Below, piece by piece: positions 19,626-64,000 of a DNA stretch of 64,000 nt. The DNA comes from Hamiltosporidium tvaerminnensis FI-OER-3-3 (Eukaryota; Fungi; Microsporidia), in NCBI GenBank assembly GCA_022605425.2, contig CM061247.1, positions 1,736,001-1,800,000 on the forward strand. The letters run 5' to 3'. Each line of letters begins with the position of its first letter. Within the stretch, counting starts at the first letter, position 1. Made by a program: the position numbers and the translations under genes. Below the pieces are notes generated by a model. It was not told the origin of the DNA and searched no databases. It saw only the letters and a program-made list of their open reading frames with translations.

Positions 19626-19672
19626 AGAAAATTAGATAAAAAAATTTAGTTTTATTATTTTTTCTAAAATTT

Positions 19673-26226: not shown

Positions 26227-26299
26227 AAAATATTCTTTATAAAAAAATTTGCAAAAAAAACTTCAATTCGCCATTTTAAAAATATTTATTTCCTTTACT

Positions 26300-35224: not shown

Positions 35225-36045
35225 AAAATCGTTGGGTGTGCAAAACGGGTGTGAGATCATTTTTTGATTTAAAAACTGCAAATTTTCTAATTGAAATTTC
35301 TCTATTTCTACTCAGACAGCCAGAGGAGCAGCAGACCTTCCCATTTTGCCACTCAAAATCGCACAGGTCTGTCCCGGGTTCTGATATAGGTGGATAAACA
35401 TGTCACCTACATTATATGTGTTATTCCAGATATATTAAGTTACCAAATATTCTGCTTTAAATTTTAGTTAATTTTTTGATCTACGAAATGGCGAAAGATC
35501 TTCTATAAATTTATTTTGTAGTTTTTTTATATGTAACTACATCGCAGACTGCAGTTGAAAGTGTAAATAATTTATGTAAAAACATGGAAAGAAAGCCTTA
35601 CTCACAGAATCAAAAGACTTGGTACCTGGTAAATACAAAAACAAACCATCTAAACCGGAAAAGCTAAGTAGCAGGTTGTACTAATTGGTATGACTTCGAG
35701 CTTCTAGGTAAACCCTATGTAAGTCGCTGAGATATATTTTATATAGAAGCTTATTGAGTTCGGAAAGTGTAAAGTAAGAGTGATTAATGCATAATCTTGG
35801 GGAGCCTAGGGTAGGTTTCAACCTATGATTACTCCAAGCTACAGACACTAACAAGCACGGGGAAACCGTCTCGCTTAATAATTAGATTCTATTCACCTTA
35901 TAGATGAAAGGCATTGGGAAATAGGTATGGTGAGGGTACCTTTGGAGTATTTAGGGACAGTTATTATATTTTAAGCTAAAACCGCGGTAAAGTCATTAAA
36001 AAAATGTAACACGTGCCACTGTTTTTAAAAGATAAATATTTTTTT
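35225..36045 (+). mobile_element. ~730-bp retroposon, old copy 6, with a ~200-bp foreign segment
   Basis: Head GGTGTGAGATCATT, then unrelated sequence at about 35270-35480, then collinear body (AAGCTAAGTAGCAGG, GAAAGTGTAAAGTAAG, AGATGAAAGG). Confidence 0.8.
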
Positions 36046-37819
36046 AAAAAAATCAATTTCTTTATATTGCTAATCTATTATTAAATCTAGCTAATAATTC
36101 ATTGGTTTTTTGCTGTTATCTCAGACTTCAAAACACCTAGTTCATAAATTTTTTAATAGGTGAGATTTTTTTTAGTTAAAATTATATTCAATCCATTTTA
36201 TAACAATATTCTGAAACATCCATTTGATAATGTATAAAACTAAAAATTTAGCCAATGCAAATTTACTAAGCAAAGTTTTTTTTATAGCTCGTTCTATCTT
36301 TTCGTATGTTTATTAAATATCTATTACATTAATAAGTTAATAAATACAGCAAAAAATATTATTAATTATGATTTTAGTTGAATGACTCTTAGAAAATTGA
36401 TATTACTTTCGATTTTTATTGAACGTAATTTTCATGGAAATATATATTTTGAGAAAGCCTAAAATCTTTAGTATTTCTATAAAAAGGTTTTATAAAGACT
36501 TGAAAGTCTTACAATTGCCATTGTTTTCAATTATGACAAATAGATCGGCAGATGTATTATAATTCCGTTATTTTTAAATACGGTTGGGATTTTAATATAT
36601 CATTCTGAACGAGTAGATTGTCTTTCATTCAAACCTTATTCTTAAACAGAATAGGGAGTGTATAATTAATAATCAAACGCCCCTCTTCAAATTTTAAGTT
36701 TTTAAACCTGGGAACCAGAATAGGAAATAATGACACAGAATTTTTATTGTAATATACGAAAACGTTTTTTAATATCAAAAGATTTTTTAAGTTCATAAAT
36801 TGTTAGCAGTTTACTTAAATAATGTTTCATTCTAAAACTCCCCCCTATATTATGGTCGACTAAAAGTAAAATCAAGCAGATCCTCACAACTGCTGAAGCA
36901 TATGAGTAAGAAAAATAAATATTTATACTTTTTTTTAGAGGAAAAATGAAGAATTTTAACAGGAAAAAAACATTTTAAAGTGAAAAGTTATGAACAGGAT
37001 TAAATAATGAAAAGAAAGAAAAATTTAAAAAAAATGTAAACTTGAAAAAATTAAATTACGAAAAAGTAAAAAAAAATGTACATCAAATAAAATTAAATTA
37101 TTTTCTCTTTTTATATCATTATTCTGGTGTTTTTAAATCACCTTTAAAAATGATATGTTGTTTATATTTGAATTTTAAAGTTGTGAATTTTAAAAAGGTA
37201 AAAAACAAGACCTGTACTAGTAAAATAAACTTTAATTAAAAGGCTTTAACGATATTTATATCCTTTATGCCTTTGCATCTATGTTCATACATCAATATAT
37301 GAAATATAATTAGGGTTGAACTCTAAAGAAAGATGGGGAGGAACACACATAATATAATATAATAACAATTAAAAATCAAGTAATTTTTTAGTAAAAAAAT
37401 ATACCTAAAACGTGCGTAACGAATAAGATATAAATTTCAAAAATAAATCATTTTAAATACACATATTTGTTAAAGCCAGAGCAAATAATGGAATCTTCTC
37501 ACTGCCTTTTCTATATTTTAAAAAAGAGGAAAATAAAATATGAAGTATATGCAACAAAGAGCTTTATAAAAAGTAACATTTGTTAATTTGTTTTCATGGA
37601 ATAAACGCAGTTTTGGTTAGAATACACAAATCCACTTCTGTTACATCAACGGGGTCACCTAAGATATCTACATCTCGAAGCTTTTCATCCAAAAGATGTG
37701 TACGCATATTTAACGGTGAGACAGTTGTCGTTGCGTGAACGCATATAGGTATCTTAAGCACCCATACAAAAAGCTGTTTTTCCACTGAATACACTTTATG
37801 AACCAAATAAACATTTAGC

Positions 37820-38218
37820 CAAGATTTATCTCTGCAGCATATATGTAATTCATCATGACCTTGGAATGTAATAGAAACATTTACAACCTGCTACTTAGCA
37901 TTACTGGATTGGATGCGTATGATTTTCTGCATATCACAGGCGCTAGCCTTCATACCCGATTAGGCAAAGCCCAGTTTCCATACTTTTACAGAGAAATTTA
38001 CTTAAAACTTAAGCTGAAGTTTTCAATCTAGTTAATAAAAAACAATCACCTATTTGTTATACAAATCTTTTTAATGAGACCTTATTCTTTTTGTACCAAT
38101 TCACAAAGAAGCAAACGAAAATGTAATGTGCTTTTTATCTAACTCTAAATCAAAAAAAATTACACAATTCTTAATCATTCCGAACCCATAGTTTTTTATG
38201 TGTTTATGATCCCTCTAC
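37820..38218 (-). mobile_element. ~730-bp retroposon, partial old copy 7 (5' half)
   Basis: Reverse complement starts GTAGAGGGATCATAAACACATAAAAAACT and contains TAGCGCCTG and GCTAAGTAGCAGGTT. Confidence 0.75.
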
Positions 38219-38723
38219 GAATCATCTTCAGAATATTTTTATAATTTAACTTTCATTCTTAATGATCAGATAATTCTATTTTACCAAGTGGAATATTTTT
38301 TAAGATATTGCAATAATTTTTAATTGTATGGGATTCTATTACTATTGACTTCGCATTCTAAATTGTCACTATTATTCTTATTACAAAATTCGACTATAAT
38401 GCTATTCCATTGATTAAAATTCTATAATTTTATGTTTATAGCCATACTACCAATTAAAAGATGTAATGTGTAACATAGTTTCAAATTCGATTTGATGGAG
38501 CAATCTTTTAGAAATTTGATTTGTTAGTTTTTCTCCATTTTTTATAGAGTAAAAAGTTTTTAATTGATTCTTTTTTTAAAGAAACATTTTAATTTTGAAT
38601 TACTCATTTGAGTAGTCTTGCTATCATAAAATGACCAATCAGGAGTTGATAATAATATCTAATCATTCGATGGATATTATTGGTTATTAAAATTACCAAT
38701 ATTTTTTATTTAAGTAAAAAAAG

Positions 38724-39497
38724 ATGAGTCTTCCAGATATGAACGAAAATATAATTTACGAAACAGATGAAAGTAATGAAATGTCTAAGAAACAGCCGGG
38801 TGAAAAAATATTTCTAAAAACCAAATTTGAAAGTGATGTAAAATGTAAAATATGCTATTTATATCGAAATCCAATAGATTCTACATGTGATCTTATATCA
38901 CCATGTGGATGTAAAGGATCTATAAAATATGTTCATAAAACATGTTTAAAATTGTGGCGATTCAAAGGAAAAAATCTTCGCGAAATAAAAAAATGTGAGC
39001 AGTGTTTTTGTGAATATAAAATTGATGAAGATTTAATACCGCATCAATATTTGATTCGATTGACATCTATATTTGCAATGACTGTTATATTTCTTTCATC
39101 GAACTTTATAATTAATTCGTTTGGAGATGCCATAGCACTTATATCTGACGAGTCTAATAATTTGGAGCAAGAAATGATATATTGTATTTTTAAACCAAAA
39201 CCACAAAAAATACCCAACTTTTTTCAAAATTTTCGATTTTTAAATGATAAAGAAAATTTTAAAATAGGATATTTAGCTTCAACTGTGATTGCAATCATGT
39301 TTTACCAAATCGTTTTTAGATTTAAATTTTTCCCCGTTTTTAATTATATTTTTACAATTTGGAGAATTTTTCATTTCGATTTCACAATCGATTACTTTAT
39401 TTTATATATCATGAGTTTTTATTACACCAAAATGATGTACAATGATATATATGAGCAAACAGATTATATATTTGTGTTTTTATTAAATTATAGATAG
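38724..39497 (+). CDS. RING-CH membrane E3 ubiquitin ligase, copy B
   Basis: Paralog of 26300-27079 with an identical RING domain and a different N-terminus and loop. Confidence 0.9.
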   Translation: MSLPDMNENIIYETDESNEMSKKQPGEKIFLKTKFESDVKCKICYLYRNPIDSTCDLISPCGCKGSIKYVHKTCLKLWRFKGKNLREIKKCEQCFCEYKIDEDLIPHQYLIRLTSIFAMTVIFLSSNFIINSFGDAIALISDESNNLEQEMIYCIFKPKPQKIPNFFQNFRFLNDKENFKIGYLASTVIAIMFYQIVFRFKFFPVFNYIFTIWRIFHFDFTIDYFILYIMSFYYTKMMYNDIYEQTDYIFVFLLNYR

Positions 39498-39568
39498 AGT
39501 AAAGGAAATAAATATTTTTAAAATGGCGAATTGAAGTTTTTTTGCAAATTTTTTTTAAAGAATATTTT

Positions 39569-40114
39569 TTATTTTTTAAGAAGGTTTCTGATTTTATTAT
39601 AAGATTTCAATAAATATAGATCTGCAAAATCTGGTTTATTCGAAATTCGCTCTATTCTTTTTTCCTTCTTTGTTAATTTTCTGTTACTTTTCATGTTTTC
39701 TTTCAGAATCAGAATAAAAAAATCTAAAATTATTAGAAATATAATTCCCATTATAATACCAGAGATCATAGTAAATCTTTTCGATTCCTTGATTGGTTTA
39801 CTAAATATAGCATTGTTGAGAATTCCATCATAAAAAATTCTTTTGGTTTTTATAATGTTATATCCTTCTGTTAAAATATGATCAGATTCAAATTTAGACA
39901 TTTTCAACTTCGGAAACGGGTTTTCATTCTTCATCATTTTTGCGTATCTTTTTCTTATTGAACGAAAAGATGCGTTTTCAGAAACACCAAACATTTCATA
40001 AAAAGTTTTGAAATTTGTTTTGTTCTGTAATCTTTCTATACTTTTCAAAACAAATCCATAATTATCCTCCAAACAGTAGGTTGTAGAAGATATAAAATAG
40101 AGAAAATATAACAT
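39569..40114 (-). CDS. DnaJ-domain membrane protein, copy B
   Basis: Paralog of 25681-26226, with the same length and the same CCC start context. Confidence 0.8.
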   Translation of the reverse strand: MLYFLYFISSTTYCLEDNYGFVLKSIERLQNKTNFKTFYEMFGVSENASFRSIRKRYAKMMKNENPFPKLKMSKFESDHILTEGYNIIKTKRIFYDGILNNAIFSKPIKESKRFTMISGIIMGIIFLIILDFFILILKENMKSNRKLTKKEKRIERISNKPDFADLYLLKSYNKIRNLLKK

Positions 40115-41251
40115 AATTTTATGGGTAATAAATTTATTTCCATTATAATAGATTTCATAATTTAAACGCAAGTATTAAACGCCAAATAAAATAATAAAAA
40201 TCAAGGGGTAAAGTGAATATATATGAGCGAGTTATGAATCTTCAGAAACGACGAAGTCGATTTATCTAAAAATGTTTGTTTGGTTTGTGAAGTAATAAAC
40301 AAATAATACTGTCTCGATTATGAATGACTCCTATGTTTCGTTCATAAAACTTTACAATCCATAATAGTGTGTAAAAGTTGAATCTAAAAAATTTAAGACA
40401 TTTGATGAAGCAAAAAAATATATTCAGAATAATTTAAACATTTTTTTATATTATAGTTCATCACAATTAAACCAGCGGCGATAAATATGTTTATAATTTC
40501 TGATTTATATTTTAAAAATTAAGATCTAATGTAATATATCTAAAGGAATTTCTTTTTGAGCTTTTTTTTACTAATATTTAAAAATTTTCTGCAGAATTAT
40601 GTTGTATTCATAACTCGTTATATCATTACTAACAAAAAAAATAAAGGTAAAATGAGCCATGCGACTCAATTAGCAAGGATAAAATTATAGAGCTCGATTT
40701 TTTCCCCTTAAATCAAAAATTAGCGGAGAAACATATCTAAAAGGCCAAAAATTATTTCAAATTTTTACTGCCTTATAAAAACTTAGCATTACTTGAAATT
40801 ACTCGACTAGTTTGAAGTAAAGTGTAAATTTAATGCAGTTACGGAGTTGAATCGAACAAAGTATCATTTTAAAATGATAGCATATGCTGATGTTTATTAT
40901 AATAAAATCGAGATTTTTCTTTCTTTCTAAGCTTTGAGAAACAACATACAAAAAAGACGAGATTATAAATTTCTGAGACTGGTATTTTGAGTTTCGAGCA
41001 GCTTATTGGTGATGAATTTTCGCATTAAATTGAACAAAAAAGAGCATATTTTGGAAAAAAAATATCTTACAGAAGTATAAAATATAGAATCGATAATGAT
41101 TAAAAGAGTGTAATCTCTCTTATTTATATTTTCTTTTATTTTTTACGTTTTATTATTTCTCCATCATTTTAAAAAAAGATTATTATAATGTTAATTAGAT
41201 GAGAAATAAATTAAAATAATACCAGGAATTCTTATTATTGTTTTTCATTCT

Positions 41252-41975
41252 GTCGAGGGAATATAACCACATAAAAAAATTTCTGCTTGTAATGAATACG
41301 TGAAACGGGTGTGAGGATCATTGTTTAGATTTTTGGTGGGAATAAAACCAAACTACCTCTTCGGTTGTTCCATGGAAGGTATGATGAAGAGGAGAGGTCA
41401 AAGAAACAGCGAAACTTTTTCTATAAATTTATTTGTAGTTTTTTATGTAACTAAATTGTAGACACACCATGAACATGTAGGTAATTGCCATGTAAAAGCA
41501 TGGAAACCTAGCCTTGCTCACTCGGGTTAGAAGACTTAGCGCCTGGGAGATATAAAAATAAAAACAATTTAAAGCTGGGAGAGCTAAGTAACAGGTTATA
41601 CCTGTTGGTATGACATTGCACTGTCTAGGTGGACCCAATGTAAGTCTGAAATATATCTTAGCTAGAAGTTTCTTGGGTTCAGAAAGTTTAGAGTAAGTGG
41701 GAATGCTGCATAGTCTTGGGAGGGCAGGGAGGTCTTCGGCCTTCGATCACACTCTATGCAACGGACATTAACGAACTCCGGGCAACAGCCTCGCCTAGTA
41801 ATTAGGTTCTACACACCTGGTATATGAAAGGCTTTCGGACGTAGGTATCGCGGGGTTTACCGATGGAGTGTTGGTGTAACAGTCATTTATTTTAAACCCA
41901 GAACTGCGTTAATGTCATGCGAAAAATATAACTCTAACCACTGTTTTTAAAAAAGGTATATTTTTTAACTAAAAG
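41252..41975 (+). mobile_element. ~730-bp retroposon, copy 8
   Basis: Full-length collinear copy. Confidence 0.9.
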
Positions 41976-42182
41976 CCATAATTATTTTTTTTAAAATAGA
42001 AAATATTGTCAAAAGCTTGATAATTTTGAAATAAAGAGCATAAAATAGATTCGATTACTGTTATTTCACTTTTGAATCTCCGTCTTACTATCTAAACATA
42101 AATTTCTTGATTATTTTGTATAGCTATTTTATCAACTTTTTAGCAAATTTTAAGAAGCTAAGAGAGAAGCTATAACTATGTA

Positions 42183-42397: not shown

Positions 42398-43657
42398 TTT
42401 TAACTATGTAAATAGCCTTAATTTATCTCGATTGTAATATTTTCGATGCTTCTTTTAACTAAAAAGCCACAAATTACTCCGTAGTGACTATGCACACGAC
42501 AATTAATGCTTTTTTTGCCTTTCTGTGTGTATTTTATTTCTATATTTAATTATAGATGTATAAACAATTATTGTTGAATTTTTAAAGTAATTTTGTACCT
42601 GCTAAATTAAAAGTTTTGAATAAACAAAACTACTAACCTTTATAAGTATTAATTATCACAACATGATATCTCTAAAAGATCCTCTAAATTAATTGATCCC
42701 TGCAAAATGTAGACAGAATGGAATGAAAACAGATCGTAAAGTTAAATTAGCAAATAGGAAATAATGAGATAAAGCTGCTTAAAAATTAAATACCAATAAA
42801 AAAGGGTTGAAAATTTATGGTTATCAAAAATATCTTTAAATTATTGTAAAACCCTCAGATGTTGCTAAAGACAGGTTTGAAAGACTTAAAATACATTAGT
42901 AAGCAAGTTAGATAAAGCCTTAAAAGCCGGTTTTAACGATTTAGAACTCATGGGCTAGATAACTAAGCTTAAGATGACAAAACTATTTTCTTTTTATTTT
43001 TCTTCTCTTGAATGTAAAATTATGCACGTTTCTTTTAGCAAAAACACCAGTTTTCACAGCAGTAAATTAAAGAAATATCCTAAATACAATGAATAAAGTC
43101 GGCGAATTTTAATATTTGCAAATAAATTTCCAAAAGTCAGAATAAAAACAACCAATATTTAATAATTTTTTTTGTTGTATTTTTCATTTATATGCTATAA
43201 ATTAAGTTGTTTCTTTATAAAAATAAGAAATAATACGCAAAAAGGATTAAATAAATTTTAAGTATGAGATTCAATATTTTTAGTCAATTATGGGAAAAAA
43301 TTATATAACATAATCAAAATTAGGTTAAAGGTTTAATTTTAAAGGATTTCAACGATAAAATTGAAAAAATAAACAACTCTATCAAAAGAAGTATTCGAAG
43401 AACTAAAAAAACAATAAAATTTATCTAATTTGAATATATTAAAAAAATATTTTTAATTTGAAAGAAATGTCAAAATTATATATGACTGATATATTTAAAA
43501 GATCAAATGATAAATTAAAAAAACTTTTTATGTAATTTATTACATCAAAGCAATCATTAAATAGCAAAAAAAGGAAAACTAATGACCTTCGCATTTAATC
43601 AAAGAATAATTTACCTATTAGAGAATGTTCTTTATAACTGAAAATTAGGCAAATACC

Positions 43658-44227
43658 ATGAAACTTTATAACATTAATGAATGTCTTGAAAACAATCAAG
43701 AGAATATTCAAAATAGAAGAAAAATGTACTGGAAAACCAAAGAAGCACTTAGAAGAGCAGATCGAACCAAAATCGATCTAAAGAATATCGAAATGATAGA
43801 ATTATTATTAAATATAGAAAAAAATGTATATTTTAAAGAAGAAAGACAAATAGAAACTTATCCAGAATTCATGCAGAGATGCAAAAGTAATTTTTTAAAA
43901 GACTTTATTTGCTGTAATAATATATTTACTGATTTCGATACGTATGTATTGCACGTTCAAAAATACCATCAAACGGAGATAGAAGCTAAAAATCAGTCTT
44001 CTATAAATAATTACGAGAACTTTCAACTTTTGAATTACGATTTTTCCAACTTTCAAATACCAGAGTTAAATTTATTAAATGAGAAACCATATTTTGGAAT
44101 CAAAAAACCATATCCGTGTAAAGTAAAAGGTTGTTATAAAAGTTATAAAAATCCAAACGGATTAAAATATCACATGATTCATCATCATTCAAATATTTTA
44201 AAGGATCAAAAAGAAAATTACAGTTAA
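43658..44227 (+). CDS. Sfp1-like C2H2 zinc-finger transcription factor, copy B
   Basis: Differs from copy A at 4 of 189 aa in the provided translations. Confidence 0.85.
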   Translation: MKLYNINECLENNQENIQNRRKMYWKTKEALRRADRTKIDLKNIEMIELLLNIEKNVYFKEERQIETYPEFMQRCKSNFLKDFICCNNIFTDFDTYVLHVQKYHQTEIEAKNQSSINNYENFQLLNYDFSNFQIPELNLLNEKPYFGIKKPYPCKVKGCYKSYKNPNGLKYHMIHHHSNILKDQKENYS

Positions 44228-47200
44228 ATGATTAAAAATTTGTTATTATGATTTAAACTTTGTTTCTTTTTTGATATAGTTCCATCATTCTTAAAATTCT
44301 GATAATTTCATGCAATTATCAGGAAAAACTTTATTTTTGACGCATTTTATCACATAATCTCGAATTATTAAGCAATCTTAACTTAACAATCCCTTTTAAA
44401 TTATTAATTTTATCATTAAGATATCTATTTTTTGAAAAATATTTTAAATTTTATAATTTTTGTTGGATTCAACTCTTCAGAATACAAATAAAAACCAAAT
44501 TTCTAATTTTTTTTTCCTAAATCGTTTATTTTCTAGTTTTGATCCACACCAAACCTTCGCAATTTCGCGCTTTGTATTTCATAGCTACACTCATGCGCGG
44601 CTTTTACAATTATTTCATTACAATTGAGCTTTCTTCAAAAGTATTGACCGGAACAAACTAATTTAAATTCTTTATAATCGCGGCTCATTTCTGCTTTGCA
44701 AAGTAAAGCATGTTTTTTTTGCTTTGAAACTATTTTCGATTTTTTATAAATTATATCTAAGCTTTATATTGGCTATTGAAGGTGCTTCTTTCATTATCTG
44801 TGAAATAATAAAAAAAAGCTAGAGAAGATTTTTATTATTTAGGATAAGATATGAATCAACGATATGATACAATATGGCATAAAATTGCATAATTATACGC
44901 AATTTGCTTAAAAAAGTTTTACTTTGGCCTACATCAACAGCGAAAAAAAGACTTGCACTTCAGCGACTGTCAAATTCAAAGAAAGGCAATGGCTTCGTAA
45001 CAAATCGAAGTAGTTACGAGTATCAAACAGAGGTTTCTAGCTTATCAATTAACCGAAATTTACTAGAAAATCATTCAATAAGATTAAAAAGTAATTCAGT
45101 AAGACACGAAAACATATAATCTGTGTTTTATGCAACAAACCCAAAGGGAATATTCTCCAAATGTCTGTATAGTTGGCGCCAAGTTGTGTTTAAGACGAGA
45201 ACATCAAGAAAATGTACTAATAAAGATGGTCGTTCGTTTCCAAGAGCCTACCTATATTACTTATTTACGTAAGAAAACGCCGGAAAATACCATTTGAGAA
45301 ATTTCAAGATCTGTATCATTCCGAGCAGGTGTTATATATAAACGAAAATAAAATATTCCAAAAGAATAATTCATCGAACGACAATTTTTTGAGAATGTTA
45401 CAAAACCGTGGTTTAGACGTTTATAGAGATTTCTTATTCTAATTATTGAATAACTGCTGTTGTATTTATGCACAGGCCGCCTCTATTCATCAGAGTTGAA
45501 CTTTAGAGCCTTGGAGAATAGAAATCAAAAGCCATAACTATGTATTGTATGAGCAACAAAAAAGGTTAAAACCTTTAAAAACTTAATTAAGAATAATATA
45601 TGCAGGAGTTAACCATTCCATAATACAAGGTAATTACTCTGATAAAAATACAATGATAAAGAAGCTACTAAACACAATTTGAACGTTAAGCGTAATTATG
45701 ATTCTACAGAATTTTTACAATTAAGATTTCTCTTTGAACAATACCAGCTAATTTAATTATAAATCGTAAGGTTATTGGGGTTTTAGTAGCTTGCTCATGC
45801 AAAACACTTAAAAGCATTTCTTAAAATATATAGACAGTATGAAAAATCACAATTAGAAGATACTGACAGAGTTATATTATCGCGAGCTGGTTAAAATCAT
45901 TTGGCAAATTCAAAGCTACATTACAGCAGAAACGGTGCAAAGCGCAGAAATAATTCGTAGCAGTATTCGCAATAAATTCAAAGATTTTATATAGAAGAAG
46001 GAAAAAATACTCCGATAGATAGCACAGGTACTGGTTCTGCCAAAAGAGAAGGTTTCGGGAATATGAACTGCTGTGAAATATTCAAAGATCTAGAGATTTC
46101 AGTTCATTAGAACGGTAAAAAAATCTCTTAACCGATAGAGTAACAAAATTAAGGGATCAATAAGCAGAAAAAACTTCCTGAAATTCGTGATGAGAGCATT
46201 TACCACACCTTAAAGAATTTCTCTACATCTTAATAAGATACAAAGCTGTTCAAAATAAAAATATGATTGGTATATGAGATCTAGAAATGAGTATATTTGA
46301 GTTCTGGACCGTAAACCCGGAGTATATTAACCCTTAAAATAACGATTTCAAAAATTACAGAAATAGCGTCTGATGCTGAGCATAAAAATGTTTTTTTCAA
46401 CGCTTACACAGAATAAATCGAAAAAAATCAGCTCATTTATTAAATCTGGAATTCTTAGCTGTGCTTTATACTCTTAAGCCATTCTATAGATTATTGATTG
46501 TGTAAAAAAAATATTAAAGTAATATGCCAAAATCGCAATAGATATGCAATGAAATAATACAAAAAATAATTGATCGTTAGAATATCAGATATGTACCATT
46601 TCCCCTCTTTTTCAATAATTAAAACGATACGCGCGTAATACGGAACCAGAAAACATCTTTTCATGTTTAGAAGATCTAAAAATACATTTTTAAATTATAA
46701 ATTTAACTAACATATCCCAAATACGTGAATTTTCAATTATTAAAAATTAATTTACTTTTCACGAATTTGATAATTGAAATGAGGTCTGAAGCCAATTGCT
46801 CGCATTAAACAAAAGTTTACTGATATCATAAAAGCACCATGTTACTATAAGTTTTAAAATACGATCTCCCACAAATATTGAAATAGTTTCAAGAACTAAA
46901 AAGGTATTAAACTTATAGATTTAATTATTACTAATAAGAAATAAAACAATACGGTTTTATATATTATGAAATACCTACTTGTCTGCTTCTCGTGCAAATT
47001 TAATTTTTCTTTAACTAAAAATATACCAAATTGTTTGTTTCGATATATTTCGGCGCTTGATTTATGTGTAATTTTATTTTTTTCTGATATAAAATGTAAA
47101 TTAATAAAGTACAATAGCTACAACGAAAGTATATATTTATGCTTAATCCATTTATTATTTAGTTAGCGTGTTTTTAATTTCTAAAGAAATATTATCTCGC

Positions 47201-47619
47201 TGCCTTTTGACTTAGAATTGTTTATCTGATCAAATATCAAAACCATTATAATTATATGTCATGATTTGATCGAAACGCAAAAGCTAGATATATTATATAT
47301 AACCTTGAGATGCTTTGGGTTAGAATCATAAATTTTTATATTAGTTGCTTGGTCTAAAATTCTTTAAAATTTATAAATAATATTCTCTTTCTTTAAAATT
47401 AAAGCTGATAAAGTTTGACTGCATACTAAAAAATATTTTTACGGCGCAAAAATATAAATAATTTTATCATATTAATAGAATTATATTCATTGATTCATTC
47501 TACACAGATAAAACAAACCTCGGGTGCTTAATAGTGGCAGCAAATCTTTTATTGACAATGCTATACTCAGTCCGGGTTTTAGTTTCTTTTTTAATCTTAA
47601 TTTAAAAACGTAAAATGTA

Positions 47620-48908
47620 TTTTTATTTAATAAAATTCTGGGTTAAAATATTTTTTAACATTTTTATATGTTTTCTTCTACCTCTTTAACCACTATTGTC
47701 TCTTCTTCCAAATCCGACTCTTCATTTATGTTATTGGTCGGTTCCTCTAAAGTGGTTCCTCCTTGTAAAATAAAGGGTGCTTTATATTTTAGTTTAAATT
47801 TTTTTGCACCATCTTCCTCTGTTTTCGATTCTTTTAAAGATGGTATTGGTTCCTCATGCATCTCTGATCTCATAATAACACCCAATGACGCTCTCTCTCA
47901 GCTCTATTCGGCATTTAGTCCTGACTCAAGTCCTCTTCGTCGATCAAAGAAATTGTTTCGACTGTTTTATTAAGTACTATAGACTGAATGTATGCCTCTA
48001 CATTCATGGGTATTTCTAGTCTTTTAAGATGAGATTTATGGTATTTTGTCACAATACCGTCCCAGGTCATCACATAAGGGATTATCTCAACACTACACTT
48101 ATAAATAAGACCTAACTCATTGGCTAGCAGATCATACTTCCAAAGTTTTTCAGTTTCAACTATTTGAAGTGAATCTTGGGAAGTGATTCCTACTTCAATG
48201 AGTGTTATCTTATTCTTCTTCTTATCTAAAATAAATATGTCGGGTCTGTTATTCCGAATTTTAACATCAGTTTTAATTCTGGTGTCCATTCTTATCTCTG
48301 CATACTCATTATCAAGAATTTCTTTAACTGAGTTACTTCTAATTCGTTTTGAAGACTTAAACTTATATCTCTTTAAGAGAAGTAAATGTAGGCATCTAAC
48401 CACTTCATTATGCCGTCTGGTGTAGTCATGGCCTAGCATTTTTTCACATCGAGTTGCTTGATGATCTATAGTCTTACCAGATTTATTGCAATGTTGACCC
48501 ACACCATCTGCTCCCCAGAATACATTTCTATCCTGAATATAGCAGAACACAGCTTCATTTCGTGGCCTAATATTCCCTCTCCTTAGCCATCTTGAAGAGT
48601 CACTAACACTCACAAGCTCATTTTTTCTTGCATTATATAACTTTGAATGGAGTTTTCGTTTTTCTATTTGTTATATAGATTTGCAAGTTGAGCTTCTTCT
48701 AACCTTTTCTTAATGACTTCTTCTACCAACCTGTACTTTACATTTAAGAAGCCTGTAATTAGTGCAAGATGGGTTTTATTATTTTCTCCACCTTAAGGAT
48801 TGCTGCTCGTCAGTTGATATTTCTTTACTTTTTTCCAGACAATCCAAGAGTTGCAGAAGCATATGTTCGCTTCGCAACTCAACACTATGTAGGCCTCTTC
48901 CAAGTTCA
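47620..48908 (-). mobile_element. 5'-truncated RLE-type (R4/Dong/NeSL-like) non-LTR retrotransposon, frameshifted
   Basis: ELGRGL post-RT motif, a decayed CCHC knuckle (QHC...DH...C), YTRRHN, and RPDI...IEVGI...EK..KY restriction-like endonuclease. Same 3' end as 19105. Confidence 0.93.
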
Positions 48909-51900: not shown

Positions 51901-52539
51901 TCTTGATTTTCAAACAATTTCTTCATATTGTATATTGAAAACTCTATAAAAAAATAATCGATAAAAATTTATAGAAAGAAACTCAAACAACACCAGTTTT
52001 TTAAGCTATTGAAATAATAGTTTTATTTTTGAATATTTGATTTATCAATATAGGTTTCAAGGATCGTCTATATTATTTTATTTATCCTTCATTATTTTAG
52101 AATAACCAATAAGATTATTTAGAGCTTTAAACAAAAAAATTAGGATAGCTGTAATAAATGATTATAAAGAAAAATTTATAGTTAAACATAACTAAAGAGT
52201 ATTATCTTCTAGTTTCATTGTATTGGTACTGATTTAATAACAGAAAAGCTTATAGTGTTTTAATTCTTTTTATTATATTTTAACGGCGTTACATATATTC
52301 TATACAATATATATCGAATTATGATAGAACATTACGAGATTTAATTCGAACTAACAAAACAAAGTATTTTCAAAAAATGGATAAATTTTTTACACAATAA
52401 CCAATAGGAGACTTATAATTAAAACCTATTTTTCTAATTTTCCATCGTTTAATATACTATATACAAAACTATACCAAGAAAATTAAAACTCATATAAAAA
52501 GAGTAAAAGGGCTAAATAGGAAATTTTAAAGAAATAACA

Positions 52540-53274
52540 CTTTATTTAAAAGTATCACATCTTTTTTTAAAACAGTGGCAAGTGTTATATTTGTTTTCAT
52601 GACATTAACGCAGTTCTAGGTTTAACATAAATAACTGCTACCCCAACACTCCATCGGTAACCCCTGCGATACCTACGTCCCAAAGCCTTTCATCTACCAG
52701 GTGTGTAGAACCTGCTTACTAGGCGAGGCAGTTGCCCGGAGTTCGTTAATGTCCGTTGCATGGAGTGTGATCGAAGGCCGAAGCCCCCCCCCCCTGGGCT
52801 CCCCCAAGACTATGCAGCATTCCCACTTACTCTACACTTTCTGAACCCAATAAACTTCTAGCTAAGATATATTTCAGAGATTTACATGGGGTCCACCTAG
52901 ACAGTGCAATGTCATACCAACAGGTATAACCTGCTACTTAGCTTTCCTGGCTTTATATGGTTTTTTGTTCTATATCTCTTAGGCGTCAAGTCTTCAAACC
53001 CGAGTGACCAAGGCTAGGTTTCCATGCTTTTACATGGAAATTATCTACAAGTTTAGCTGCGGTCTGCAATCTGGTTACATAAAAAACTACAAATAAATTT
53101 GTAGAAAAAGTTTCTCGATTTCTTAAACCTCTCCTCTTCATAACAACTCCCATGGAACAACCGAAGATGTAGTGTGGTTTTATTCCCACCAAAAATCCAA
53201 ACAATGATCTCACACCAGTTTCACACACTCATTGCCAAGCAGAAAGTTTTTTATGTGGTTATCCTTCCTCCACA
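52540..53274 (-). mobile_element. ~730-bp retroposon, copy 9 (young)
   Basis: Exact 15-bp TSD TTTAAAGAAATAACA at 52525-52539 and 53275-53289. Confidence 0.93.
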
Positions 53275-56200
53275 TTTAAAGAAATAACATAACTTTATTT
53301 GATAATAACAAACATTTCTGCACAATTTACAGAATTTTTAATGTGTATAATTTTTTTTATTTTTCTTAAATTTCTTTCATATTTTTGAATCTTCAATACG
53401 ACTATATGAAACTATATCAACCAAAATAAGAAATTCTAATGGACAAAAATGTAAAAAAGCACCTAGAGATTCGAGTCAGATACAATTATCAAATGCTTGT
53501 ACAATTTTTTTGCTATATTAGACGTAGTTTTCACGAATTAAATCAATATCTTTCAAGTCTTTGTTTTTAAAAATTTTGAAGTGCTTACACGGTATATACA
53601 AAATATACGATTAGAAATTTAAAAAAAATAAGTTTAAACAATGTACTAATAGATGGTAAAATTTTATTTCACACAACCATAGTTTTTTTACATAGTTTCT
53701 GATATTTCAAGCTGTTTACCACACATGTAAAAACATTATATTGTGATCAAGATTTTTTGATAATTCTATATTCGGTTCATATACTATATACAAATATGAA
53801 ACGAAAGAATTCAAAAAAAATAGGTAAAAGAAACATGCAATTTTTTTTTCAAATGGTATAACAAAAACAACATTCATCTTTATCAAATCATATTTGTAGT
53901 ATTTGACACTTTTATTGCATAAAATTGTATCTCTTTTTAATCTGTTTTTTTTTAAAAATTTCGAAATCTGCAATGTTGATATAAATTGACTCGATCAAAC
54001 AAAATATAAAAAATGAGGCAATGTTATGCCGATAAGAATAAAAAAAATTTAAACCAAAAAATTTAATAAATTATTTAAGAACTTTTGAAGTATTTTAGAA
54101 ATTTATTTGAAAAAAAAATGTATTTTTAGATTATATTTTTTAAAATCATTCAACCAATCATACGTATAAAAATCAAAAAGATTAACTTGCCTAAATTTTA
54201 AAGAAAAATATCTATAAATTTTAATGAAATCATTTATTTGGTTTTACTACACTGACATATAATATTTGTGATGTTTTAGGAAGATGAAGTTGCATATGTT
54301 TTTAGAAAATTTTCCCCTTTTTAAATTGCTTATACGCTGTTTAGTATGTATTTTTAAAGAATTCGAAAAAAACAAATTTAAAAATTTACTGTCAGAACTT
54401 CAGAGATAATTACAAAAAAAAACTTAAGAGGTTGTTGTAAGACTACTTGAAGCAAAAATAAAAAGTTTCTGGCATTGAATATCACCTTTTAAAATATATT
54501 TAAGCCAAGATTGTAATCTTTAGTCATATCGTAAGTATTAATCCTAGAAAAATATTTAATGAAACTACACCCAAAACAACGACTCGAGTTAATTATAAAA
54601 GGGTAATATTATACCTTAAAGTAATTTTCATATTATTTAGAGTGGTTTAGTATTTTATAGTGCATTTGTGTAATTCGATGTTTTAACACTTCTTCGATTT
54701 AGTTATGCACAATATAAAAAATTTATTGCTTATAGTTGCAATATTAGGTGATAAAAATATTTAAAAACACAGCTAGATTTTATAGTAAACTCTAAAATAA
54801 AATTATTACAGCCAAATTATATGTATTCTATTATATTTTTATGCATTGAAAGATCAATTATTTTTTAAACCAATTTTTTTTATATTTTTTTAATCGTATA
54901 TAAGACTTACTAAATCTAATTACAAATCAAAAAAATAACTAAAAAACCGAAAAAAACATTATAATGATTTCTTAAATTCGTAATTGAATCTTATGTAATA
55001 TTTTTGGCATGCCTTAGGCAATGAATTATATATTTTTTTAGTTTATTTTTAGAACTATGCGATTTTAATTAGAACCATAAGAAAATAACCTTAAAAAATA
55101 TCAAAAATATAATAGAAAGTCAAATATATTTACTATACGATTATAATATGGTATAATAGAGACAAGGTTTTTTAGATACTTTTAAAAATCAAAATAAGAC
55201 ATTATAAACATATGTTTAGATAGCCTTCGAATCGTTTAGCATATTATATAATAACTATACAAATTAATGACATAGAATATGTGAAATTTGTGCTTAAACA
55301 TATACATAATCTTATCAATAAAGTATATAAATAGGTTAATTTTTAGAATAATAATGAATATATGCCAGCTATCGCTTTAAAAGTATTCCCATAAAAGTGG
55401 ATAGTAAGGTTTTAACAACAGAGATAGTCTTAAAAAACTTATCACATTTATTTTCTAAAAACATATAATTCTGAGAAAACTTGAGTAATTTGCACAGGCG
55501 TTTTTTTAATCAAAACCTAGATATATTTTTTATTTTTAATAAAAGATTGAAATCAAGTATTTTGATATTTTAATAAAAGAACATGGATTAAAGTGAAAAA
55601 CGGGTAATTTAAATTCCACACCTTTTGGAATTATAATGATTATTTAAACATACCCCCCTATATATTATATTTTATTGCCAAGGGTTTTGCATTTACACAA
55701 AATATTGTATACAATTTATATTCTTTCTATTTTTGTAAATTTGTAAAAAATACAGCCCTTATATTAGGTGAGAAGAAAAAGACTTTATAATGGAATTACA
55801 TTTATTTAATATAGGAACTATGTTCATGTAAACCTTCTTTTTTTTGTACCTATAACTAGAGATTTAAGTATGAAAAAAAAATAATTCTAATTGAAAACCA
55901 AGAAATGATATGATAATTTAATTTTTTTATTTTTAAATACAAATATATTGATCTGAAGTTAGCATCAGGCATATTAGAACTGTTTAAAGAAAAACATTTC
56001 ATGCGTACTATTAGCAAAAGAAATTCTTTTATCTTTGGAAATTCACTTTTTATCAGTGAGAATCATTTATAGTTAGGCTTTTTATCATTTACTTGTCTAA
56101 GAAATCTAAAAAGATTATATTACTTTTGGTAAAAATAGATTATGTCTGAACCATACTGACTTAATCTGCATATTCTCGTCTGCTTATTGTTTAACTCAGT

Positions 56201-59200
56201 GTGAGCACGATTCATTAAAACGCCGCTTTAAAATATAAGATTCGACTACCCTGACCCAACCGCCCTTCATTCCATTCGTCTATATCAAAGTTAACTATCT
56301 GCTCAACGGAATAAATCATAGTGGAAAGAATCACACTTTAAATTCGCATTCTTCTTATTTTTATATATTTCTTCATTGTATAAATATTAATGTTTGAGTT
56401 TCTATTTTGCGATTTAAAAATATTAATTTTTTTTTGCGTATAAATCTATATTCCCTTTGTTTTTTAAAAATATATATTAGTATGTATAATGGGTAATCTA
56501 ACTTTTTGTTTGTAGGTGAGGTTATTAGAACCTAAGGATGAAATCCGAATTTGAAAAATTGAATAATTGATTAAAATCCAAGCTGATTTTTATGCCAAAA
56601 CAAAGATATTTGATCAGTTATAAAACCTAAGCATTAGATCAACCTAATTTTTTTAAAAGCTACAATTTAAGTTCCAAATAAATTTTAATGTGTGTTTCAA
56701 ATGTATAAAAGAATAATCTAAATGAATTTACAATTTTAACTCAAAGAAGACAATTTTTTTTAATTTTTCCATTTAATTTTGCAAACAACTACAAAGAAAA
56801 ATATTTATTAAACAGTTTAATTAAAGGGAAATTAAATTTTTAAAAATATTTTTTTTTAGGTTCTTATAACATTTAATGAAATTCCAAGAACTTTAAAAAA
56901 ATAAATGCCTAGATTCAGGCATTCTTTTATATTCCTTTTTATATCCAAAGATATAGCTAACACATACAAATCCAATTGAACAACGAGTGCAGAATTTCTT
57001 TAAAAATATAAATTTAGTAGAGTAAAAAGGAAATAGAATATATTAGTTTAAATAATAAACATATAAAGTCTTTAATCTCCAAACACCCTTGAAATTTCAT
57101 TTTTATACTTTAAATGACTAACCTCGGTTCATAAACAAGTAGAATAGGCGTCCAAATAAATGGCGATATATTTTTCTCACATTTCTATCAATTATCAAGA
57201 GCATATTTCCCAGAATTTGCAATTTTTATCTTTAATTTAAATTATCGAACGAAATATGAATTGAGAAAATAATTTTACTTGTTTTATATGAGATATTTAT
57301 AAAATTTTAGTGTGGTTTGCCTATATAGTTATATTGAAGTAAAATATTTTACTTTTTTATATATTTATAAAGATTTCTTAAAATAAAATTTCAGATTATT
57401 TAAAACTTTAAGAATTACTCTCTAGAATTAAAACCAACTTTCATCTGGGTCACCCTGCGGATTTAAGAAGTCAGAACAAAGAAATATTCTTTTAATATAA
57501 TATAATATTTTGTATAAAATTAGCTTTAAAAAAATCGAAGCCAAGTAATATGAATTTTGATTTATTTATTTAAGTTAAGTTTATTTTTTTGATTATTTAG
57601 AAAAGCACATAGTATTTAAATTTAAAAAATAACATACCTTTTTTGCAGTTCAAATTTTATGAATATTTGCTTTTTCAAATAAATTGGATTTTAAACGAAA
57701 TAAAACCTTGATTTGAAAATTTTCAAAAGAATGAAATGATTATGAACCATTAATGTTTTCTTGAAAATGTTTTGAGATAACAGGATCTCTTATTTTCCTA
57801 GCAATAAATACAATTAAAACATATGCGAGAAATGCGTTTATTAAATAGATTTATAATTATCGCTGATCATTTTTATAGACGTTATTACGAAAATTGTTCC
57901 CTAAAAAATAGTATCTAATATAATAACCGAAACAAGTGAGATATTTGAGAATATATATGAATAATTTTTTTTTTCAAACCAGTTAGAAATTTATACAATG
58001 ATCATTCTATATATTCATTTATCAAGATAGATTTTACTCATTAAAATTTCTTGATTTCCACTAAACTGTCAATCCTTATGACTGGAAATAAAAAAATTGT
58101 CTTATTTAAATAATAAGCTTTTTTATGTATGAAAAGAAATCAAGAATGTAAAATAGAAAATATAGAATGTATTATTCGGCTTTTAGGTATTTAGAGTTTA
58201 TTTAGAAATAAAATATACATAGGTTGCCAAAAATTAATGTATTAAGCCAAATACAAGAAAAAAGGCACCATAAACCATAAATACCTTTATTATACCATAA
58301 AAAATATAATATATAATCATCTAATTTCTTTTAATTCTAAATCTACATTTCTTTTTGCGAAAAATATTTTTAAATAGAAATCCCTAATAATAGGATTTGA
58401 AATAAATTTAGATTCGAAATATAACGATTTTATTGTTTATATATTCTTCTTGTAAAATGAAAAAATAATTCACAAGTAAAAGTTATTGTAAGTTAATAGT
58501 TTTTAAAATAATAACAAAAAATTCAAGTCATCTTCCCAATAATATTTTATATAAACTGATTTTGTCTTTTCCATTGTTGCTATATCCAAATCTTTTGTTT
58601 AAGAAGAGAAATGTACACAAAATAGTTTTTTTTATCATTTATTACAACCTAGTCTGACAAAATGATATTCTATAAAGTTCAGATTCGTGGTAGAATAAAG
58701 AAACTAAAAATTTTAAAAGTATTCATTTTTCATAGGCATTCTTTATAAATAAATATATTTCAAAAAATTCCTTTATTTTTATTTTATAAAAATTACCCTG
58801 AAAATTCTATTACTAACTATTCTATGTGAGAAAGAAAATGAATTGAAAGGGTAAATGAAGGAATCTGAATAGAAAACCCAAAGAAAATATCAAAATCAGA
58901 AGAAGACTAATTGAAAGAAGTAGGATACAATTGTTTTTCATTTCTTTATCGAGGTATTTTCTATTTTTGTAAGTGTAAAGTTGAGTGGTTCATTGGTTTT
59001 AGATACAACATATGATAATAGTAAAAGAAATTGTAGTTTTGCCATAGATCAGGATGCTTTGCAATTACAGAGGCTGTGTAAGTAGAAACGGGTCTTATTT
59101 CGGAATTTTTCAAAGAAATTTTTTAGAACAAATAAAATTTTCAAATATACCAACAATTGTTAAAAATTTTAAAAGCACACTAACACAGAAATAAAGTAAT

Positions 59201-60416
59201 AAAACAAGCAAAGAGATCTCTGGGTAGGTTATTACTTTATTTGTGTATATATTTATAAAGAGGGGTTGAGGAATAGAAAAAAGCGATGTATATGTATGAA
59301 GAAGAAGGCCTAGCGGGAAATTTGTCACATTGTATCGTCTTAAAAAAAATTAATTTTTCAGTTTATGAGTGAGATTAAGGGCGAACACATTTATTTAAAC
59401 AGAAATTAGTTTTTCCAAAGACATATACTATATTTGATTTTGATTTAAAGTTTATGAGGAGAGGGTTAGATACACAAGGACAAGTGAAGGGTAAGATAGA
59501 GAGAAATAGATAATTCGAAATTTCTATTTAGTTTCATATAGAAGAGGCCCTAATGTGTTATAAGTTTTTAAATCTAAAAATACTTGTTGTATATACATTC
59601 TTTAAAAAATATTCTATCTAAATAGGCAATATTGTCCCGTTATCGAGCTCATTGCCTTAGAGATACTGTAAAACAGGTATTGATGTTGATACGATTATAT
59701 ATCAACATTTTCATAAGTGAATAAATTCACTTATTTAAGTATATTCGACTGTTTTACGAGATCGAACGAGTTAGTTGTTTACTACCCTATGGATTTATGT
59801 CCAGACTTATGCAAATAATCTTACATAAGTCCTTTAACAAACCATATCAGCGTAGATAGTAAGAGTAAAAGTACATTCAGCTGCGAATATCAAAGTAAGA
59901 ACGAAATCGTTCAGTATTTGTGGCATGTGTTTCATTGCTTCTACATTAGTATGCTGAAAAAGAAATATCTCAGGGCATCTGAGGATTACTACAAAGAGAT
60001 AGATAATCCCATACCCATAGACAAAGTAAGAGTACCACCTTAGAAGATGCCACAATATTAAAAATTTAACTATATTTATATTTTTTCATTTTTTTTTAAA
60101 CCAATTGCATATTGTTACATAATAATGATACGTTCCTACTTCTTGATAAGATATCTACTAAACTCTAAGAGAGAAGCTAAAATATATTGTAATAAAAAAA
60201 ATACCCTACAAATCATCTTTTACCTATTTAAAACAAACCTCGCCTATAAAAATTTCGGACTATCTTTAAAAATATCATTTCATGAATTCGCATAGACAAA
60301 TAAATTTTTTGCTATATTTCTTTAAATTTCTTTTACATATGTCATTGCTTAATCAAAAAAAATAATAGTGTAAAATCATTTTAAATTTTGAAAAATTATA
60401 AAAGTTTTCCATTTCC

Positions 60417-60809
60417 GATATTCTCTTCATAAATATACATTAATAATACAATAAATACAATACAATTCTAATATTCTCTTCGAGAATATCCCTCCATGTC
60501 TTTTAAATGAACTTCAATTCTGATATTCTCTTCGAAAATCCAAATTCTACTTTAACTTTATTAGAGAGACACTTTTGATATTCTCTTCGAGAATATCTAT
60601 TTTACCAAAATAATTAAAGAGACATATATGATATTCTCTTTGAACGTATTTATCTTAGGCCTATTACATGAAATTCGATTCTGATATTCTCTTCGAGAAT
60701 ATCTATTTTAGAAAAATAATTAAAGAGACACTTCTGATATTCTCTTTGAGAATATCCATTATAAAAGCCTTACAAAAACCACACTTTTGATATTCTCTTC
60801 GAGAATATC
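60417..60809. repeat. Regularly interspaced palindromic repeat array: 8 x 21-bp GATATTCTCTTCGAGAATATC with 31-34-bp variable spacers
   Basis: Cores start at 60417, 60470, 60522, 60577, 60630, 60683, 60736 and 60789. No cas genes are present in the window. Confidence 0.9.
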
Positions 60810-63800
60810 TATTCAAAATATAATAAATAGAAAAAGTAAAAGTATGAAAGAAAAAATAAGTATATGGTTTCGAAAAGTAAAGTCAATAAATTGTATTTTA
60901 TATAAAAATAAAATTCCAAGGTATATCAAGAAATGCTTTAACCTGTCAGATATCCACAATACCATTATGATCCGTATCTAACAAGTGAAAAAATAAAAAA
61001 CTTATTTATTTTTTGTACGTATAACTTATTTTCTTTAGCTTAAATGATAAATAATAATTTTATCACGAATATTTATTAAATATATACAAAAAGTGTCTAT
61101 ATTACTTGCCTTCGCTTTCTTTTCTTCGAAAAGAAACATAAGAATCTAGAGGTTTGTTGATTTATTTCAAAATTGACGTACATTAAAAGTTTTTCAACAA
61201 AAATTTGATACTACAAAAAACATTCTTCGAATTTTTTAAAGAAAAATAACTTTCAAAAAAAAAGTAACTTTTTAACTCAAAACATGCAAAACCAAATTTG
61301 CTTTTTTAGAAAACCAAAATTTCTTTCGTTGTGTAAACAAACCTAAATTTGAATCAAAATTTTATAAGTACAATTTATTACTGAATTCTCTATAGGGTTA
61401 TTAAGTTGGTAAAACTAGATATAAGTAAGATTTATAAGATATTTACAGATTTACAAATGTATTTCCTTTTTAGGTAAATTAATAATACTTATAAAAATAT
61501 AAGTTTCTATTTTTACTATAGTCAAAAAACATATGTTTTTTACCATTATTTGAATTACGATTTATATTTTATTCAATTTCCTTAAAGATGAATGCTGTCA
61601 GTTAGTTTAATACATATTTAATAGGATATAAAAATAAAAAGTAATTTTTTATAAAAAAAAAATTAAATTTAAACCAGCAAAAAATAACTACTATTACATA
61701 CAGAATCAAGTTAAAATCTTACAATATTTTAAATTTAAAGAGATATCACCTTTAGTTGCAAATATTTGCTTTAACTTTTCTATTTTTGAGTAAAGAACTT
61801 AAAATTTAAGTTATAAAAAAGGATAATTCAATCTTAATTAAGAGTTTACAGTAATTTTTGTTGAAAGATGGAAGTTATTCGAAATTTATTAAACCAAACA
61901 TAAATCTTCCAAATCTATATTTTTATTTACTCTATTGAAAAAATTTTTCCAAAATTTTTACTTACTAAAAACAGAAAATAGTAATTAAGAATGGTAACAT
62001 AAAATATTTTTGGAAAAAATATTTTTTTATAGAAATTCTTCGAATTTCGTAGCGAGAATAAAATTCTAGCTCTATTAAAAAGATAAAAAAAATATATAAT
62101 AAAAAAAAACTAATATATAACTTATATAATTTATTATAAAAGTGAAAGTACCCACTTTTAAAAGTAATTTGAACAAGGTTTAGGCTTTGATAATTTTACG
62201 GGCGTAATTATTTTAAATTTACCGAGCTATAATTCAAAAATGATAATTTTTTTAAAAAATCTTCAGATTTTTGTCAAAAACAAATAATTGTTCATTTAGT
62301 ATACAGTTTTACAAAAAAAATCTTATTAATACGTTAAAAGACACTCGGAAGATATACCTATCAATAAATAAGTTGATAAAACATAAAGCAAGTCTAAAAT
62401 TCTAAATATTATAAAATTGAAAATTTAAAAAGTTTTAAAAAAAAAATAAAAAATTTAGGAAATTCCAAAAGCTGTAAAAAAACACGAAAAAACAGCTAAA
62501 TTTAAGAGAAAACGTAAAAAACTGGGAAAGAACACGTAAAAACATATAAAAAACTTAAAAATAGTGTAAGTACAGGTAAAAAGATATAAAAAACTTTACG
62601 ACTAAAAAATTCCAGTAAATAAGTAAAAATCATTCTAATAAATTTAGAAAATAGTTTAAAAATTAAAAAAAACATATAAAACCTTCTAAGAAAAGTAAAT
62701 TCTTTTAAAAAAATTACAAACACCTAAAACCAACGAAAGTTTAGGCATTCTTTAAAACTTCTTTGACAACAAATTTAAAAACCAAATTCGAACCGTCTTA
62801 TAAAATATAAAATTGTTATAAAAAACCAGTCTTGAGTTTAAAAAAATAAAATTTTGAAAAATAATGTAAACCATGTATTAGATAAGCTAATAACTAAATA
62901 AAAATACTTACAAGTTCTAAGAAAGAAATACCGGCTGATTAAGAAAGAAAAGAATATAAATCCAAGATATTGCAAAAAGACACAAACTGAATTACGAGGC
63001 ACCAATTTAGACTATAGTAACGTTATAAAGATTGTTCAAAACCTTCCGTTTAGCAAACACTTTTAGAACTTATTTTTAAAAATGTATATATTATATAGAA
63101 AATCTAAGAAAGACAAAAAATCTATTGACATTCTAAATTTAACAACAAACCAAAGACACTAAAATATAAAAATATGCCAAAAGAGATTATTAGTTACGTA
63201 AATGTTAGAAGGTTCATATAACAAGAAAAATAGTAGTTTAGAGAGTAAATAGCCTTCGATCTTACATATTACAAATTTAAAGATTTATATGTCGAATTAA
63301 GAAGATTCCATAACTGAAACTAGACGAAGAGAATGTAATTAAATAAAATATGGTTTTTACTTTTATTTTTTGTAAAATTTAAAGTTTAATGTAATATTTT
63401 CTGACTAAAAAATTAGGTAGTTTATTATAAAAGCCTTTAAAATATTTTATTTTATTGCTTTCAGATAAAAAATTTTAATTTCAATACAATTAGACTTAAT
63501 CCAAGAAAAACATCAAGAATGCTCTCCAAAAAAAAGTAAAACCAAAGTTTTCCGAATTAAGGACTTAGGTAACAAACAAAAATGCTTTTTAGACATGTAA
63601 ATAATTGATTTATATACCTAAATATAAAAAATTGTTTCAAGTAAATAAAAAAAAACGAAATTTGAGTATAACACTATTTATCTTAAATAGAAAAAAAAGC
63701 TTAGGTATAACCCTTGGACCAGCAAAAGTTCAATATTTCCATAACAAGCAAAATAGATAATATAAAAATCAGGTAAAAACTTTTAATGAAAATTCAAATT

Positions 63801-64000
63801 AAGTTCTTAGTAAAAAAATTCAAATTTTCGTTTAAAAAAAATAAAAAAGAGGTACGTATTGTTGCAAGACATATTAAAAAATGTTTTAGATAGGAAACAA
63901 TTTTAATTTAACATTAAGATATAAAAAATTTGAAATTATAATATAACAATAAAATAAGATTAAAAAAACTTTATAATTAAATAAAAAATAAATTTATAAT

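Follow-up and report, generated by a model that had tools for sequence, protein, structure and literature searches.

Retrotransposons that target telomeres have been described in the blast fungus as well as in insects, algae and Giardia, and conserved short cores near chromosome ends are also a feature of the yeast X-element STRs, subtelomeric arrays that bind general regulatory factors (Tbf1/Reb1) and whose cores, set among drifting spacers as in the array described here, are non-palindromic and do not lie in a LINE tail. In the fungus Magnaporthe (Pyricularia) oryzae, MoTeR1 and MoTeR2 are telomere-associated non-LTR elements at TTAGGG ends (PMC7367193), while TRAS1 and SART1 of Bombyx mori are APE-type LINEs of the R1 clade that reside in telomeric repeats, TRAS1 nicking the G-strand between TT and AGG (PMC7265360). 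Unusually long 3′ UTRs characterize HeT-A, TART and TAHRE of Drosophila and GilM and GilT of Giardia, and the 3′ UTR of HeT-A carries a promoter (PMC5537684). No telomere-targeted retrotransposon has been described in microsporidia in the literature searched, nor does the Hamiltosporidium genome paper mention one (Angst et al. 2023, PMC10542269), and the telomere-oriented LINE family of Hamiltosporidium considered here is apparently undescribed.

The DNA analysed (the window) is a stretch of 64,000 nucleotides from Hamiltosporidium tvaerminnensis, and the palindrome array that it contains lies on scaffold_3, 43 kb from the right telomere, the TTAGGG repeats of which are seen in L019. Homology with copies on other contigs begins at one base, 59378, to the left of which the sequence is unrelated, and continues through the array into two minus-strand ORFs, ORF2 and ORF1, past the end of the window. 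The array is part of a mobile element and lies inside the 3′ tail of a LINE. A preliminary description had placed it in a gene desert, which is correct locally, in that there is no ORF of at least 75 aa in 53974-64000, but not for the surroundings, as there are several genes in the window and a 915-aa RT ORF lies 110 bp past its end. The features are as follows.

59378 to 64000 in the window, minus strand: 3′ noncoding tail of an APE-RT non-LTR retrotransposon, the full 4.7 kb of which extend from 59378 to 64109 in window-continued numbering
59370 to 59395, minus strand: 3′ end of the element and insertion junction, with the telomere-like tip CCCT(AA)
60417 to 60809, unstranded: palindrome array of eight 21-bp cores (9-bp arms, 3-nt centre) with homologous spacers of 31-34 bp
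60417 to 60597, unstranded: ancestral-type part of the array, cores 1-4 and spacers 1-3 (periods 53, 52 and 55)
60598 to 60809, unstranded: A1-specific expansion, spacers 4-7 and cores 5-8
L016:110-2854, just past the window, minus strand: ORF2, 915 codons stop-to-stop
L016:2838-3743, just past the window, minus strand: ORF1, 302 aa, with a CxxC...CxxC motif

ORF2 contains an RT domain (RVT_1, E=1.3e-31, aa 461-687) preceded by an N-terminal APE domain that Pfam did not detect and that hhalign recovered against the N-termini of APE-RT hits (probability 97.9%, E=4.9e-13). The APE motifs N/E/Y/GDxN/D/H are conserved, the final DH being NH in three of four sequences. ORF1 matched no known family (Atlas scores ≤0.80). 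Homologues of the ORF2 RT are found in H. tvaerminnensis and H. magnivora, and the closest RTs outside Hamiltosporidium are only 26-33% identical; in H. magnivora the protein is 88-90% identical, on contigs of only 2.1-2.3 kb that end before the array would be reached. A second RT subfamily is 41% identical, and its element abuts the copy on contig C9, which is truncated just before ORF2. Nine copies begin at the identical base at their 3′ ends, while those on C9 and C12 are 5′-truncated, so that RT, APE and a fixed 3′ end with variable 5′ truncation, three features of an APE-type non-LTR retrotransposon, are present.

The sense strand of the element terminates in CCCT(AA), at a TTAGGG-like site, and the same tip is joined to unrelated flanks at six junctions. 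These flanks have TT or TTA at their ends and contain only one or two degenerate telomeric repeats, with GGGTT directly before the tip in three of the six. No A-run was found at these six 3′ junctions, and no target-site duplication at the five junctions searched, the 5′ end of the element being undefined. The 5′-truncated copy on C12 is directly capped by telomere repeats at a TA seed. Insertion would very probably proceed by target-primed reverse transcription in which the CCCU(AA) end of the RNA pairs with a TTAGGG-like 3′ end of the G-strand, and insertion at or near chromosome ends would generate outward-facing head-to-tail arrays, which would spread by subtelomeric recombination as well.

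Eighteen homologous copies were found on 10 of the 17 contigs, one to three per carrying contig, and none on the other seven. No copy is more than 190 kb away from a contig end, a zone that makes up about 30% of the genome, and all have the 5′ end facing outward (18/18 in both cases, the copies not being independent); 11 are at telomere-capped ends and seven at uncapped contig ends (end status from Table S1 of PMC10542269). Such confinement to chromosome ends with uniform polarity is that of telomere-specific non-LTR elements. Several chromosome ends are colinear for more than 24 kb toward the telomere, past 83 kb in window-continued numbering, hence recombination, and not retrotransposition, spread some of the copies. 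A new module family begins near 71.4 kb. The interval 59378-76501 matches in size the longest repeat of 17.12 kb in the genome paper (PMC10542269); as a bounded unit it was set aside because the homology continues beyond it.

Other observations concern how the copies are assembled. The terminal 715 bp of the element (59378-60093) recur as a module that is 92-93% identical at the right end of C9, on C5 at 123 kb and on C6 at 887 kb, with different internal sequence attached in those three copies, and in the copies on C16 and C3 a tail of 72% identity is joined to an ORF2 of 96% identity, all of which points to module shuffling. Further 3′ tips related to that at 59378 (67-73% over 150-330 bp) occur at L017:2500-2720 and L017:3960-4540 and indicate head-to-tail stacking of noncoding relatives.

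Compared with the described systems, the element works like MoTeR, TRAS and HeT-A, yet it is a member of none of them. It resembles the MoTeRs in the 5′ end that always faces outward, in the head-to-tail arrangement and telomere-like terminus, in having an ORF-less partner with common termini (MoTeR2 there, subfamilies X and Y here) and internal blocks of tandem repeats, and in de novo telomere addition to 5′-truncated copies. MoTeR1, however, has a REL endonuclease and is about 5 kb long, whereas the Hamiltosporidium element encodes an N-terminal APE domain, which sets it outside that family; it also differs in its separate ORF1, in its 4.7-kb 3′ tail with a conserved palindrome array and in junctions that contain only a partial repeat, often far inside the subtelomere. 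The nick register of TRAS1 matches the TT|AGGG of the Hamiltosporidium junctions, and SART1 has functional stem-loops in its 3′ UTR, but TRAS1 and SART1 have poly(A) ends and need two or three intact repeats, in contrast to the degenerate flanks and six junctions free of poly(A) seen here. With HeT-A, TART and TAHRE and with GilM and GilT the element shares an unusually long 3′ UTR and polarised head-to-tail arrays in which the 3′ ends point to the centromere. In contrast to these systems, the Hamiltosporidium element has no poly(A), and its host genome retains telomerase and TTAGGG caps. No report of a dyad-symmetric phased array in the UTRs of the HeT-A group or of GilM and GilT was found in a limited literature search.

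The cores of the window array start at 60417, 60470, 60522, 60577, 60630, 60683, 60736 and 60789, which recovers exactly the eight cores and the periods of 53, 52, 55, 53, 53, 53 and 53 bp of the preliminary description. The 10-mer that it had called invariant is in all eight cores, and the right-arm decay that it had noted in units 1, 3 and 5 amounts to four mismatches in each; in addition, unit 2 has a G>A change at position 1 and the loop is TTT in units 5 and 7. The array is beyond chance: at ≤3 mismatches there are five matches where shuffled sequence is expected to give 0.05, and at ≤1 mismatch there are 29 sites genome-wide where a control pattern gives none. Column identity is 0.86 in the cores and 0.51 in the spacers (shuffled spacers about 0.47), a difference with p=0.0002 both by column permutation and by a uniform-rate simulation of duplication, so that the equal divergence expected of an ordinary decaying repeat was not seen. 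The period was proposed to put every site on the same face of the helix, and it is indeed about five turns, but since it ranges from 51 to 55 bp across subfamilies the helical phasing is only approximate. Scans for Rfam families and tRNAs gave no match, and a scan for bacterial promoters, not relevant to a eukaryote, gave counts at chance level.

The number of cores varies among copies: eight on C2 and C14, nine on C13, four on C9, C12 and C16 (at 189 kb), three to four in subfamily Y and two in subfamily X; the copies C14 right, C13 right, C16 at 61 kb, C7 at 872 kb and C3 are represented by alignments and single core matches, with their units uncounted. The stretch 60417-60597 is colinear with the four-core arrays of subfamilies A2 (C9, C12) and Z (C16), which have the same four cores and three spacers in identical order, and the subfamily of the window gained its further units by internal duplication. 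The C13 copy has one more duplicated unit than C2, and subfamily Y has related spacers in an order permuted relative to A and Z. Subfamilies X (C5, C6, C7) and Y (C5, C6, C16) have no RT but retain homology in the tail, the array and the 5′ region; their tail runs straight into the TTAGGG-rich region that in the intact copy sits 5′ of ORF1. In that region (L016:5600-7400) some 20 TTAGGG motifs occur singly and dispersed along the G-strand, with a few on the other strand ahead of them, and retention of the region in the ORF-less relatives makes it a candidate promoter or telomere-seeding region. In a draft contig of a second isolate, two subfamily Z cores have identical arms in a sequence that is 93% identical overall.

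The subfamilies are 65-76% identical to one another, and between them the identity is 83-89% for orthologous arms, 56-71% for orthologous spacers and 50-69% for the flanks; the excess in the arms has binomial p values of 0.004-0.0001, although the pairwise tests share ancestry and overstate independence. Within arrays the corresponding values are 75-87% for arms and 47-56% for spacers. The cores are therefore constrained and the spacers, which had seemed hypervariable, are not unusually fast, as orthologous spacers diverge at the rate of the flanks. Ranked among the 21-bp windows of the tail, the best core window reaches no higher than about the top 1%, and conservation just as strong is seen in a few other blocks. 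Such blocks, with 17-20 of 21 columns conserved in four subfamilies, lie at 62489-62509 and at 59694, 59764, 61652 and 62036. Among the 234 arm pairs of 26 distinct cores, 178 are intact, 54 have changes on one side only and two are compensatory, both of these being the common C-G to T-A. Half-site positions A4 and T6 are 98-100% invariant, whereas the centre has eight different triplets, mainly TTC, its reverse complement GAA and single-step derivatives. An arm sequence that is maintained without covariation around a tolerant centre would fit a dyad-symmetric DNA-binding site more than an RNA stem-loop. That the centre has flipped suggests inversion by way of hairpins from time to time, and slippage or template switching at the hairpin-capable cores would probably account both for the flips and for the gains and losses of units. 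The TTT centre and the neighbouring G>A are the changes that CpG deamination would give; repeats are reported to be methylated in this group (PMC12449221).

Several explanations of the array were weighed. A functionless minisatellite in the LINE tail, in which slippage, unequal crossover and template switching at the cores homogenise them and repair their symmetry, is unlikely but has much in common with the observations, including the recent exact duplications (nine cores on C13, eight on C2), the permuted spacer order of subfamily Y, the TTC/GAA inversions, which show that the arms pair or switch templates, and the many decayed cores. Repair of symmetry permits drift, yet the same 18 arm bases are found in A, X and Y, the flanks of which are only 66-76% identical, and all copies examined retain a near-perfect core, or more than one, at a constant distance from the 3′ tip. 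The improbable alternative that the cores act as RNA hairpins in the element transcript, either for RNP assembly with ORF1p and ORF2p, comparable to the 3′ UTR stem-loops of SART1, or as a Dicer substrate for small RNAs, would be in keeping with perfect cores that fold at about −9.5 to −10 kcal/mol, most of them slightly better on the sense (minus) strand, with retention of the array in ORF-less relatives, as a signal for trans-mobilisation would predict, and with an Argonaute gene found in the genome, Dicer and Argonaute having been reported in H. tvaerminnensis (PMC7313128). Changes that give G-U pairs are more frequent on the sense strand (21) than on the other (11), but the flanks have the same excess of G>A (0.25 against 0.15 for C>T), so this asymmetry was rejected as evidence. 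An RNA hairpin family would also have to accommodate two compensatory pairs in 234, the absence of an Rfam match, a variable loop, a 9-bp stem that is too short for Dicer, a minimum-energy fold of the whole array that pairs arms mostly between units, and a position 1 kb from the 3′ end.

The preliminary description had pointed out a resemblance of the core to a heat-shock element, and a cluster of such sites bound by HSF would make the element stress-inducible. The commonest core does contain the minimal two-pentamer TTCnnGAA, TTC and GAA centres both preserve one, and there are two HSF-domain genes in the genome. A heat-shock element is defined by three alternating nGAAn pentamers or gap and step variants (PMC12708596), and none of the 26 distinct cores is a perfect, gap or step element; only 11 have two pentamers and 15 do not have even these, no base is mutated more often than the G of the right-arm GAA (13 of 26), and the outer arms are unexplained by HSF geometry, which leaves the resemblance weak and HSF binding very unlikely. 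Hardly any probability attaches to a CRISPR-like memory array, a centromere or a replication origin, the superficial repeat-spacer layout being the one point in their favor. A CRISPR array requires unrelated acquired spacers, whereas these, in a eukaryotic host and inside a LINE tail, are vertically inherited paralogues that are mutually homologous, orthologous between subfamilies and, among the loci compared, match only other array copies, so that acquisition is excluded. The origin by tandem duplication that had been proposed instead agrees with this, as does the kinship it had noted between spacers 4 and 6 (84% identical) and spacers 2 and 5 (69%). A centromere would be one locus per chromosome, but the copies are subtelomeric and number zero to three per contig, and the centromere and origin readings fail because the array is not such a locus.

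The idea that led the preliminary description, sites for a dimeric protein, is still the best reading: tentatively, and at slightly less than an even chance, the array would act in cis, from within the tail of a telomere-targeted LINE, as a cluster of sites at which a dimeric protein binds and regulates the element. It is favored by the conservation of the arm sequence without covariation, and the decayed right arm in three of the eight window cores counts against it. Both ORF-bearing copies and their ORF-less relatives carry the array, with two to nine cores, and its first core is at a fixed distance of 1.01-1.05 kb from the 3′ tip among copies (1039-1432 bp for the window array as a whole). 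In the proposed mechanism, which we consider about evenly balanced, each core would be a dyad-symmetric site for a homodimeric protein, host-encoded or possibly ORF1p, that sets how the element or its neighbour is transcribed or packaged in chromatin. With its sites about five helical turns apart, the cluster would control sense or antisense transcription of the element or neighbour in the role of an enhancer, promoter or chromatin module, comparable to the promoters in the 3′ UTR of Drosophila HeT-A. A genome scan found no excess of the full palindrome near host genes over background, hence a host transcription factor would need half-sites elsewhere.

Other repeats were observed in this subtelomere and in the window. 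Another subtelomeric array in which the core is conserved and the spacers drift occupies L018:9500-10000 and L019:1-1200 (about 93.5-95.2 kb, window-continued); its core is the 11-bp G-rich motif AAAGGGTGTTA, at periods of 28-38 bp within higher-order units of 59, 75 and 88 bp, and it resembles a telomere-variant protein-binding repeat. A different non-LTR element, with an ORF of about 1260 aa that has RT and a C-terminal region with REL-like motifs, is present in two intact copies that are 98.8% identical (L017:9490 to L018:3254 and L019:3394-7200) and is also dispersed on chromosome arms, with fragments in the window at 989-1819, 19102-19625 and 47612-48907. There are two inverted duplications of host genes in the window, a DnaJ-like and RINGv-like gene pair (25228-27393 and 38409-40581, 84%) and a C2H2 zinc-finger gene (32907-34089 and 43065-44247, 97%), all named from reading the translations. 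Nine copies of a dispersed repeat, 0.6-0.75 kb long, in both orientations and 67-96% identical, are probably a MITE or solo element.

4605-5335, 13514-14275, 19642-20412, 23135-23803 and 28072-28719 in the window: dispersed repeat, copies 1-5
35480-36068, 37790-38221, 41248-42005 and 52523-53300 in the window: dispersed repeat, copies 6-9

The array alone is a modest finding, because telomeric retroelements typically have long 3′ UTRs that contain internal repeats. In this large-genome model microsporidian the LINE family explains the structure of the subtelomeres and probably also the breaks in the assembly. The array, for its part, is a compact cis-element that varies naturally in copy number (2, 3-4, 4, 8 and 9 cores), and hardly any regulatory DNA motif of the organism has been matched to a factor. 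A broader proposal, and quite a long shot on the sequence comparisons made here, is that the subtelomeres of Hamiltosporidium would be built from a telomere-primed APE LINE system of autonomous and ORF-less elements in whose 3′ tail an array of phased dyads, tunable in copy number from two to nine, recruits a specific protein. If true, each new insertion would bring its own end-chromatin or promoter module, and a partly domesticated layer of retrotransposons would exist beside telomerase in a microsporidian.
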